NCBI GenBank assembly: GCA_950097015.1
Contig: CATNEN010000029.1
Location: 1-64,000, forward strand
Source: Macrostomum hystrix
Taxonomy: Eukaryota; Animalia; Platyhelminthes
Direction of reading: 5' to 3'
DNA length: 64,000 bases
The position numbers and the translations under genes were made by a program. Below are positions 31,889 to 34,800 of this stretch, piece after piece; within the stretch, counting starts at the first letter, position 1, and the number at the start of each line of letters is the position of its first letter. The notes beneath the pieces were generated by a model. That model was given only the letters and a program-made list of their open reading frames with translations. It did not search any database and was not told where the DNA came from.

Positions 31889-34800
31889 CTAACCAGAAGA
31901 GCCGTTGATCTTGTAGTTCCGGTGGCTGGTGCTTCGGCCAGTCTTTCCTTGGCTCCGGTAACAAAGAATGATGCGGTGCAGCAGGCATTCGAATAACAGC
32001 ACCACGGTTCCCGCGGCAAAGAAGCCGGCCAGGATGATGAAGGTGCCACCAGCCTGCAGTAGGTCAACTGGCTTCGCGTCTGAGAGATCGCTGTCCTTGG
32101 CGCAGATGTTCTCGGCGCTCCACCACTTCTTGATCCAGCGAGACATCAGACCGCTGTCAACTAGGCGCTGCATCCTGAAAAGGTCTCAGAACATATAGAA
32201 TGACGTAACCCGAATGGAGTGAGGTGGGTGTGTAGAATGACGTAACCAGAATAGAGTGAGGTGTGTGTGTAAAATGACTTGGGTGGGTTAAACGATGTTC
32301 TCCGAACAGAGGCTGTGGGTAGGTGTAATTATAGCGCATAGGGATAGACGTAACCCAAAATAGAGTGAGGTGGGTCTATTGAATGATGTAATAACAATGT
32401 CGTGAGTATGTAGGAAAGTATGAACAATGAGAAATCGTATTTCAGCCCTTCTGTCCGCAGCATGATTACAATACTCATGAACTCACTCTCTGTTAATGTC
32501 GTCTTTGTAGGGCGCATCCACGCTCATTGGCCAGCCGAACGTGGCTACGTTGAAGATGTCGTTGAGCAGTAGCAGGTCACAGTTGGTCAGTGCAGCATAG
32601 CTCAGCTGAGTCCTATCTCCGATGAATGCAAACTGTCGGTCGGAGCTGTTATCGCCTTTGACTAGGCTGACGCCCTGGTCTGTCTCGGTGAATTTGGGCA
32701 TATTGCCCATCAGCTTGAAGATGTTGTTGTACGTGCTGCCCGGTGGAGATTTCTGGCGTGACAAATTTTTTTTATTAAATAGTTCTAAAAAACATCGGTA
32801 ACTACTTTGAGTAGTAATAGACATTTAGAAACACGAAAGGATGTGAGAAGTCAGCCAACCTCGAACAGCGTGAAGGCGTTCGCACCCGACTTGACTATGG
32901 GCTCGATGACCGACTGCGCTGCTAGCTGTTCCAGATTTTCAACTGAAGTTGCCGGCAGGTTCAGGGTCAGGTAGCCAATCATATCGGCCGTGTACAGGGC
33001 CATGATGACCACCACTGTGCACCACCACAGGCCCAGGACAATGCGCGCCGATGAAGCAACAGGAAAAAAATCCTGGCCTACGAGAGGTGAGATTAGACCA
33101 GTTGAGATGAGATTAGACCAGTTGAGATGAGATTAGACAAGATGAGATGAGACTAGACCAGATGAGATGAGATTAGACAGTTGAGATGAGATTAGACCAG
33201 TTGAGATGAGATTAGACAAGATGAGATGAGACTAGACCAGATGAGATGAGATTAGACCAGATGAGATGAGATTAGACCAGATGAGATGAGATTAGACCAG
33301 ATGAGATGAGATTAGACCAGATGAGATGAGATGAGATTAGACCAGTTGAGATAAGATTAGACAATTGAGATGAGATTACCCTCGTAGACCAGATGAGATA
33401 AGATTAGACTAGTTGAGATGAGATTAGACCAGTTGAGATGAGATTAGACAAGATGAGATGAGACTAGACCAGATGAGATGAGATTAGACCAGTTGAGATG
33501 AGATTAGACAAGATGAGATGAGACTAGACCAGATGAGATGAGACTAGACCAGATGAGATGAGATTAGACCAGATGAGATGAGATGAGATTAGACCAGTTG
33601 AGATAAGATTAGACAGTTAAGATGAGATTGCCCTCGTAGACCAGATGAGATGAGATTAGACCAGTTGAGATGAGATTAGACCAGATGAGATGAGATTAGA
33701 CCAGATGAGATGAGATTAGACCAGTTGAGATGAGACTAGACCAGTTGAGATGAGATTAGACTAGTTGAGAATTTAGGATGTACTTAGATATGCTGAGATA
33801 ATTCAGATCAGAGGACATGCGGTGCAAAATTGTAAGCAGAGACACAAAAACAAAACGACAAGACGTGGGAGATTTCCCCACCTTGCTGCAGCAGGGTGCC
33901 GATGGCTGACCAGAGGTTCTCCCTGTACGACACCTCGTCCGTAATTCGATCCGGCAAGTTTAGATTCCAGCCGGAGAACGGCGACAGGCGCGAGTAAGCG
34001 AAGATGCAGAAAGAACTGAGTAGCATTGAGCCAAGGATTGCCAGCCAGCTGTGCAAGGAGAACGGACTGAGCACTCGGAACATCGGGTTCTCCTGGCCTG
34101 AAAATAGGGGAGGTGAAAGTCGGTTAATCCTCACAGATTTTATGCTAGACTATTTTCATTCAATATTTTCAGTGCTTTTGTCAACACTTATTCATTAACA
34201 GTTCAAAGTGCTAAATGTACGCAATGAGTAAAGAATAAAGAAAGAGCTGAATGCAGCTCATAGAGGTGAGGTGGAGTGAGGTGGATGCCAGATTGGAGTG
34301 AGGTGGGTGCCAGATTGGAGTGAGGTTGGTGCCAAAATGGAGTGAGCTGGGTGCTAGATTAGAGTGAGGTGGGTTCCAGATTGGAGTAGGTGGGTGCCAG
34401 ATTGTGAGGTGGGTGCCAAAATGGAGTGAGGTGGGTTCCAGATTGGAGTGAGGTGTCTGCCAGATTGGAATGAGGTTGGTGCCAGATTGGAGTGAGGTTG
34501 GTGCCAAAATGGAGTGAGCTGGGTGCTAGATTAGAGTGAGGTGGGTTCCAGATTGGAGTAGGTGGGTGCCAGATTGTGAGGTGGGTGCCAAAATGGAGTG
34601 AGGTGGGTTCCAGATTGGAGTGAGGTGTCTGCCAGATTGGAATGAGGTTGGTGCCAGATTGGAGTGAGGTGTCTGCCAGATTGGAGTGAGTTGGGTGCCA
34701 GATTGGAGCGAGGTGTTTGCCAGATCGGAGTGAGGTCGGTGCCAGATTGGAGTGAGGTATCTGCCAGATTGGAGTTAGTTGGATGTTAGATTGGAGTCAG

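Follow-up and report, generated by a model that had tools for sequence, protein, structure and literature searches.

Two genes, A and B, in the first 64,000 nucleotides of contig CATNEN010000029.1 (C29) of the flatworm Macrostomum hystrix (forward strand, positions 1 to 64,000, hereafter the window) encode members of the ionotropic glutamate receptor (iGluR) superfamily, in which the SYTANLAAF gate motif of the M3 helix reads YTADMIGYL from its second position onwards. From the comparison of sequences, we consider it probable that A and B are an intact, selected pair of subunits resembling AMPA/kainate-type (AKDF) receptors, with a co-adapted variant of the collar and gate, and not with the acidic ring at the gate that an earlier note on this DNA had proposed. 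The two genes are arranged head to head, with A on the minus strand and B on the plus strand.

Two receptor genes with a changed gate motif

The exons were located by tblastn with the Macrostomum lignano orthologue P0002 (PAA64923.1, 787 amino acids) against the window, and the splice junctions of A and B are based on consensus sites and on colinearity with this orthologue. Whole-protein analyses were made on P0002, and complemented by A and B exon by exon. Gene B gives 11 colinear open matches, which cover P0002 residues 25-787 and contain no stop codons, while gene A gives seven, from S1 to M4, on 39043-31910 (-). All exon frames of both genes are open and colinear with P0002. The features of the two genes are as follows, with the evidence for each.

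Gene A
39555-39959 (-): N-terminal exon, at the position of the amino-terminal domain (weak match, colinear with P0002 residues 231-359, 29% identity, E 0.014; no Pfam match)
38499-39043 (-): S1 exons 38900-39043 and 38499-38609, the latter with NGTWNGMVG (tblastn; Pfam Lig_chan-Glu_bd 29.2 bits, cut-off 30)
35806-35937 (-): S1 exon, with the Arg that binds the ligand alpha-carboxylate kept (sequence, tblastn, alignment)
33880-34098 (-): exon with pre-M1, M1 and the pore loop ending in LLQQG, including the Q of the Q/R site (open reading frame (ORF), Pfam Lig_chan, tblastn)
32860-33077 (-): M3 exon, which runs from the last pore-loop residues (QDFFP) through M3 into the start of S2 (AG/GT sites; Lig_chan; 94% identical to M. 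lignano P0001)
32962-32994 (-): the 11 gate motif codons, equivalent to SYTANLAAFLT, gate and hinge (translation; exact pattern match 32971-32994; GluK3 alignment)
32486-32755 (-): S2 exon, with Asp at the GluA2 E705 position (tblastn, alignment)
31910-32176 (-): exon with the end of S2 and M4 (ORF, tblastn)

Gene B
52389-62316 (+): span of the gene, with matches at 52389-52529, 53051-53308, 54696-54953, 57413-57868 and 58758-58868
59113-59199, 59368-59487, 59568-59786, 60169-60386, 61227-61487 and 62008-62316 (+): further exon matches (tblastn with P0002)
60169-60386 (+): M3 exon (Pfam Lig_chan; compared with M. lignano L037:23250-23465)
60252-60284 (+): the 11 gate motif codons (translation; pattern match 60252-60275)

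Membership of the superfamily is supported by the domain matches and by the order of the exons. Pfam Lig_chan (PF00060, cut-off 30.8 bits) recognises the M3 exons of A (38.7 bits) and B (41.1 bits) and the M1-pore exon of A (32.3 bits), and P0002 scores 92.9 bits with Lig_chan-Glu_bd (PF10613) and 87.8 bits with Lig_chan. In both genes a bipartite S1/S2 is interrupted by M1, the pore loop and M3 and followed by M4, colinear with P0002, whose best solved relatives are GluK2/GluK3 (E 2e-60, residues 328-755), followed by GluA1-4 (~1e-50). By similarity and pore-loop residues, A and B are closest to the AMPA/kainate-type receptors. The contacts to the amino-acid backbone of the ligand are kept in the alignments, namely Thr and Arg of S1 and the Asp of S2 at the GluA2 E705 position, and the equivalent of GluA2 T655 is Asn (SGAN in A, SGTN in B), as it is in relatives with a canonical gate.

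In the AlphaFold2 (AF2) model of P0002, M1, the pore helix, M3 and M4 are seen, the predicted local distance difference test score (pLDDT) lies mostly between 70 and 94 for the ligand-binding and channel regions, and M3 is a single helix (residues 543-572) that runs through the motif and ends after T11. Exons before S1 are present in both A and B, unlike in the tuning ionotropic receptors (IRs). In the ~340 residues that precede S1 no Pfam domain was found, and the model alternates strands and helices there with pLDDT below 50; the related protein P0062 matches Pfam ANF_receptor (5.7e-9). Compared with GluK2/GluK3 (PDB 4uqq, 6jfy), A and B share the order S1-M1-pore-M3-S2-M4, the Gln of the Q/R site, the Asp at +4, the Arg of S1 and an acidic residue in S2. 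They differ in the M3 motif (YTADMIGYL against YTANLAAFL), in the linker from M3 to S2 (LTLN(L/I)P against LTVERM), in the Asn equivalent to T655 and in an N-terminal domain that Pfam does not recognise.

The M3 exon of A is bordered by an AG acceptor and a GT donor, and that of B has the same splice phase. Translation gave the coordinates and the reading of both exons exactly as the earlier note had them. In the frame from position 33075 the A exon encodes QDFFP, then the M3 motif and then the start of S2 (VKSGAN). The two exons share an identical stretch of 12 residues, the GluK3 counterpart of which is YTANLAAFLTVE, and HMMER aligns the gate motif without gaps to the M3 helix of GluK3, YTANLAAFLT. 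This alignment bears out the five substitutions already listed in that note, N5D, L6M, A7I, A8G and F9Y. The first motif position is Leu in A and Tyr in B, and only Y2, T3 and A4 of the nine residues are kept, with the five from N5 to F9 replaced, which places both genes below the inclusion rule of at least four of nine SYTANLAAF residues used by Ramos-Vicente et al. 2018 (PMC6307864). The retention of the LLQQG pore loop was likewise confirmed by the exon translations and the alignment: the loop before M3 ends in LLQQG in both genes and the whole reads LLQQGQDF(F/Y)P, with Gln at the Q/R site and Asp at +4.

The close database proteins of the two M3 exons come from M. lignano only. P0001, a partly mis-predicted model, shares 94% of the residues of this exon with A. 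P0002 shares 69% with A and ~93% with B. A comparison of the 12 motif codons of the two genes shows six synonymous changes and not one amino-acid change, and synonymous sites are saturated over the M3 exon (proportion of synonymous differences, pS, 0.80). Because the synonymous sites are saturated while the motif has no replacements, its conservation exceeds what these codon comparisons would give by chance, which indicates purifying selection. When B is set against its orthologue in M. lignano (L037), the ratio of nonsynonymous to synonymous divergence (dN/dS) is 0.052 in the M3 exon and 0.065 in the M1-pore exon, and reaches 0.17 in the S2 exon, with dS of about 0.7-1.1. The description of a selected and unusual gate has therefore held, with dN/dS of 0.05 against M. 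lignano and an exact motif found, among the representatives searched, only in Macrostomum.

The conservation of the motif is not singular within A and B, where the longest identical run is one of 23 residues from pre-M1 into the start of M1, and the run of 12 in M3 is the second. Strong divergence between A and B is confined to the N-terminal region. The remark that the motif is identical despite heavy divergence elsewhere is thus right for the N-terminal third, but not for the ligand-binding and channel exons, in which A and B are 63% identical.

Two near-perfect minisatellite arrays lie within the genes. One of ~2.2 kb, with a 12-nt period (window 39,900-42,200), is inside the N-terminal part of gene A, where it stays open as TILS repeats and lengthens a spurious ORF to 892 amino acids, and an array of ~1.5 kb (window 55,900-57,400) is in an intron of gene B.

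Distribution of the motif and of its acidic fifth position

As a back-translated 24-nt pattern, YTADMIGY has exactly four matches in the 220-Mb genome, whereas the reversed control has none. Besides A and B themselves, these are the members of a second A/B pair at C29:5,105,156 and C29:5,128,339. An exhaustive HMMER search with the A exon over 1.84 billion representative proteins found the exact motif in two M. lignano clusters only, and the next matches are at most 46% identical. The exact motif is therefore restricted to Macrostomum in these searches, but many relatives have an acidic residue at position 5. It occurs in nemertean receptors (YTADLAAYL, YTADLVAFL) and in monogenean (YQADMTAFL) and cestode (YQAELVAFL) homologues. 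At least eight further genes of the M. hystrix genome combine a pore loop of the LQQGQDFYP type with YTGDLVAHL, YTGDLTAHL, YTGELAAKL or YTGDLTAKL. These divergent iGluR-like loci, recognised by reading of the pore loop and gate, are:

L005, L008, L009, L028 and L031-L034: C24:1.46 Mb, C38:6.75 Mb, C24:3.14 Mb, C29:7.37 Mb, C15:0.13 Mb, C3:5.85 Mb and C1:10.6 Mb

Locus L034 has the pore loop LLQGHDFYP. The idea that Asp5 is special to the A/B pair does not survive this comparison, since D or E is found again in relatives among flatworms and nemerteans, and in the YTGD paralogues. In several of the latter the open frame breaks just after YTG or YTGD, which would fit an intron that interrupts the M3 motif. 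The same genome also encodes many canonical SYTANLAAF subunits.

Among environmental sequences, P0003 (MetaClust, 80 amino acids) and P0013 and P0018 (contigs of ENA metagenomes) have QDFYP together with an acidic position 5, and their gates read YNADLTAYLS, YTADFVSFLS and YTGDITAYLT. The clade with this acidic position probably extends to unsampled small invertebrates.

In a quick maximum-likelihood tree of 35 sequences, in which IRs were minimally sampled, A and B group with M. lignano YTGD proteins and with P0078 (Spirometra), P0158 (Cichlidogyrus) and P0091 (Logan), with a Shimodaira-Hasegawa-like approximate likelihood ratio test (SH-aLRT) value of 96. Spiralian receptors with canonical gates branch next to this flatworm clade, and IR25a of Ladona fulva (P0162) falls outside the group of 29 rows that holds A and B. 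The flatworm clade and the exclusion of A and B from the IRs are provisional.

The flatworm relatives show which of the changes are shared. Cichlidogyrus casuarinus Ciccas_010683 (P0158) and Spirometra erinaceieuropaei VZI22347.1 (P0078) belong to the A/B clade and have a (Q/N)(D/E)FYP pore loop and an acidic position 5, and P0158 also shares A-D-M at positions 4-6 with A and B. Both differ from A and B in that they keep Ala8 and Phe9 and have Thr or Val, not Ile, at position 7. The nearest full-length relatives outside the flatworms are the scallop and abalone proteins P0157, P0041 and P0052 ('delta-1-like / kainate-2-like', 38-39% identity). These have F(R/K) in pre-M1 and P-L-V-K-x-G-(T/S)-N and D-R-S-Q-L in S2, as do A and B, but their gate is the canonical YTANLAAFLT. 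The acidic position 5 and the QDFYP-type pore loop thus look like traits of the clade, while Ile7-Gly8-Tyr9 is, as far as the aligned sequences indicate, specific to the Macrostomum A/B lineage.

A literature search for the motif strings returned unrelated matches only, and nothing specific was found on iGluR or IR genes in Macrostomum or Platyhelminthes. Neither this exact motif nor the flatworm clade is reported in the literature searched. Across metazoan iGluRs, conservation of the motif is highest at positions 2, 4 and 5, with the Lambda and some Phi receptors less conserved, and that phylogeny left out sequences with fewer than four motif residues and neither sampled nor mentioned flatworms (PMC6307864). 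A degenerate gate motif in a lineage-specific derivative of the iGluRs is, in itself, an already described phenomenon, given IR75b (bioRxiv 10.64898/2026.09.30.755715) and the Lambda and Phi classes (PMC6307864).

Placement of the changed residues and alternative readings

The closed gate of GluA2 consists of T617, A621 and T625, plus M629 from two of the subunits, and A618 is the hinge of opening (PMC13672095). T617, A621 and T625 correspond to motif positions 3, 7 and 11, and A618 to position 4. N619, Y616, L620 and F623, which correspond to positions 5, 2, 6 and 9, belong to the lining of the extracellular collar pocket, the binding site of perampanel and GYKI-52466, to which S516, D519 and P520 of pre-M1 and N791 of M4 also contribute (PMC10584687, PMC10705377). 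By alignment, A and B keep the gate-lining T3 and T11 and the hinge A4. Among the changed residues only A7-to-I lines the gate, with Gly at the Lurcher position 8. The pre-M1 sequence of A and B is FRVLSP, with Arg at the position of GluA2 S516 and Ser at that of D519, and this segment is the most conserved stretch of the protein.

Asp5 most likely faces the side pocket of the collar, and not the pore. A contact between the pre-M1 Arg and Asp5 inside the collar is plausible, and we go no further than that because the Arg is older than the Asp and the two do not covary. Co-evolution of the pair was considered and found no support, as Arg or Lys is present in most relatives that keep N5, and the YTGD paralogues have Asn.

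According to the mechanism that we propose, A and B would encode subunits of tetrameric ligand-gated cation channels of the AMPA/kainate/delta-like branch, within a flatworm clade characterized by a Q(Q/G/A)(G)(Q/N)(D/E)FYP pore loop and a Y(T/Q)(A/G)(D/E) M3, in which the Macrostomum A/B lineage would additionally have fixed Ile-Gly-Tyr at positions 7-9. An amino-acid-like ligand would close the binding clamshell, which would pull on the linker between M3 and S2 and open the M3 bundle crossing. Such ordinary ligand gating is the most likely, because the residues that bind the ligand backbone, the Q/R-site Gln and the +4 Asp are all kept. The A7-to-I change would put a bulkier hydrophobic side chain in the gate, next to the A8-to-G change at the Lurcher position, while D5, M6 and Y9 would face the collar pocket between M3 and pre-M1, where D5 could pair with the conserved Arg of FRVLSP. 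The rewritten motif would then retune the energetics of gating, and may mark a specialised (tuning-type) subunit.

Several points weigh against a co-adapted collar and gate. The orientations of the residues are carried over from GluA2 by alignment, and the functional role of A and B is a prediction from sequence. The pre-M1 Arg is also present in relatives that keep N5, which leaves the Arg-Asp pairing without support from covariation. The N-terminal 340 residues have no recognisable fold, either by Pfam or in the low-scoring part of the AF2 model. Finally, the tree comes from a quick search of only 35 sequences and has several long branches, and its provisional standing extends to both the clade and its separation from the IRs.

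The alternative that fares best, although we still find it unlikely as a full account, is that A and B are tuning-type subunits similar to insect IRs, which would need a co-subunit with canonical SYTANLAAF and whose degenerate M3 only yields when the ligand-binding domain closes. In the cryo-electron microscopy study of IR8a/IR75b, the co-receptor IR8a keeps the motif, while that of the tuning subunit IR75b is largely degenerated, and the authors propose that the degenerate M3 helices of tuning subunits need only yield to tension (bioRxiv 10.64898/2026.09.30.755715). There are parallels: insect tuning IRs and A/B are both derived from iGluRs, have a degenerate SYTANLAAF and belong to lineage-specific expansions, and in both cases there are canonical or partner subunits that keep the motif, the M. 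hystrix genome having many of these as well as the expanded divergent clade. In contrast to the tuning IRs, A and B keep a long N-terminal region (~340 residues) and the Arg and Asp ligand contacts, and do not group with IR25a in the tree. As to whether the motif is common among described IRs, the possibility that the earlier note had allowed for, a degenerate M3 has been described for tuning IRs, but the exact motif has not. The tuning-type alternative overlaps with the explanation we prefer rather than excluding it.

The Ile7-Gly8 pair, at and next to the Lurcher site, could also cause abnormal gating, and the receptors would then be constitutively leaky, or effectively non-conducting and similar to GluD, acting as ligand-binding or trans-synaptic scaffolds. 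This we judge quite unlikely. A8 is indeed the Lurcher site, only three of the nine motif residues are kept, and the nearest mollusc relatives bear the automatic NCBI name 'delta-1-like', but automatic names carry no phylogenetic assignment. The GluD2 Lurcher mutation (A8T) and other SYTANLAAF gating mutants alter the same motif, at positions 7 and 8. Lurcher is, however, a single pathological gain of bulk at A8, whereas A and B have Gly, which is smaller than Ala, beside the bulky Ile7, and this combination is fixed across species. Strong purifying selection (dN/dS 0.05-0.07) acts on all channel exons and on the pore loop that holds the Q/R-site Gln and the +4 Asp, a result that favours a working pore.

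It is very unlikely, in our view, that the four Asp5 of a tetramer form an acidic ring at the bundle-crossing gate that raises Ca2+ permeability or confers proton sensitivity and acts together with the neighbouring otopetrin. The N5-to-D change is real and conserved, an otopetrin gene lies ~4 kb downstream of gene A on the same strand and again at the duplicate locus described below, and a Ca2+ site, site-G, is indeed present around the gate of AMPA receptors (PMC12226733, PMC12377769). Against this, position 5 (GluA2 N619) belongs to the collar pocket (PMC10584687, PMC10705377), and the gate is made of T617, A621, T625 and M629 (PMC13672095), that is, of positions 3, 7 and 11 as far as the motif is concerned. 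An acidic position 5 is, moreover, widespread in relatives with no known link to otopetrin, and neighbouring animal genes are not operons. The otopetrin neighbour that had been noted is thus real, but adjacency alone joins it to the receptors.

Surroundings of the locus and significance

The features identified next to genes A and B in the window are:

~23.4-26.2 kb, possibly to 27.8 kb (-): otopetrin gene (Pfam Otopetrin, E 1.8e-25)
23375-23677, 24133-24867 and 26080-26228 (-): otopetrin exons with Pfam matches
30176-30631 (+): remnant of a Tc1/mariner-type transposase between otopetrin and gene A (Pfam DDE_3, E 3e-9)

A 600-bp stretch at window 30,115-30,712 has dozens of copies in the genome, with 83-94% identity. 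At the B locus of M. lignano, where 10 kb were inspected on each side, the downstream genes are unrelated.

The block with otopetrin, A and B (window ~24,000-62,000) is repeated in the same orientation at C29:5,093,222-5,130,000, on the same contig and 5.07 Mb away. The two blocks are 97-98% identical, introns included, and the M3 exons of A and B are 27.3 kb apart in the window and 23.2 kb apart in the copy. As the window is the very start of the contig, the duplicate block is the result of a recent segmental duplication or else an uncollapsed haplotype. A DNA self-comparison of window 11001-31000 (38 of 10582 candidates scored) had placed the end of the duplication at ~28.8 kb, which we rejected, since a protein search found otopetrin to be duplicated as well. 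The duplicate otopetrin exon at C29:5093222-5093892 (-) is 98-99% identical to window 24133-24867 and ~64 nt shorter, and consists of two abutting matches that leave query residues 169-182 unmatched. It carries what may be a frameshift, and this copy may be broken or mis-assembled.

That A and B are decaying copies or assembly artefacts with a functionless motif is extremely unlikely: the locus does occur twice on one contig at 97-98% identity, the window is at the contig start and a look-up of RNA runs for window 31850-34150 gave none, but the frames of all exons are open, A and B agree in their splice sites and phases, and M. lignano has orthologues with the same motif at dS ~0.8 and dN/dS 0.05, values that largely refute this reading.

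Two further observations concern other parts of the window. A rhodopsin-type G-protein-coupled receptor gene (Pfam 7tm_1) at 12203-13394 (+) consists of two overlapping ORFs in different frames, 12203-12934 for the N-terminal half and 12696-13394 for the C-terminal half, and its split over two frames implies a short intron or a frameshift. Near the start of the contig there is a near-perfect minisatellite array of ~7 kb (window 3,600-10,750).

A stronger version of the collar and gate reading, to which we give little chance, is that Asp5, Ile7-Gly8 and Tyr9, together with the invariant pre-M1 collar, make the gate partly controlled by the collar, with leak or gating qualitatively unlike those of canonical iGluRs. 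If this were true, protons, divalent cations or a small molecule acting on the Arg-Asp pair could partly control the gate, and such control would be a natural counterpart of the allosteric site for perampanel and GYKI compounds.

The known picture of the iGluR family is not changed by A and B. SYTANLAAF is usually treated as an invariant gating element of glutamate receptors, and A and B, with their flatworm clade, keep a canonical pore loop and ligand contacts under selection despite the replacement of five of the nine motif residues, among them the gate-lining A7, the Lurcher A8 and the normally well-conserved N5. They are thus a natural experiment on which positions of the motif are required for gating, in a genus whose best-studied species, M. 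lignano, is tractable by transgenesis.

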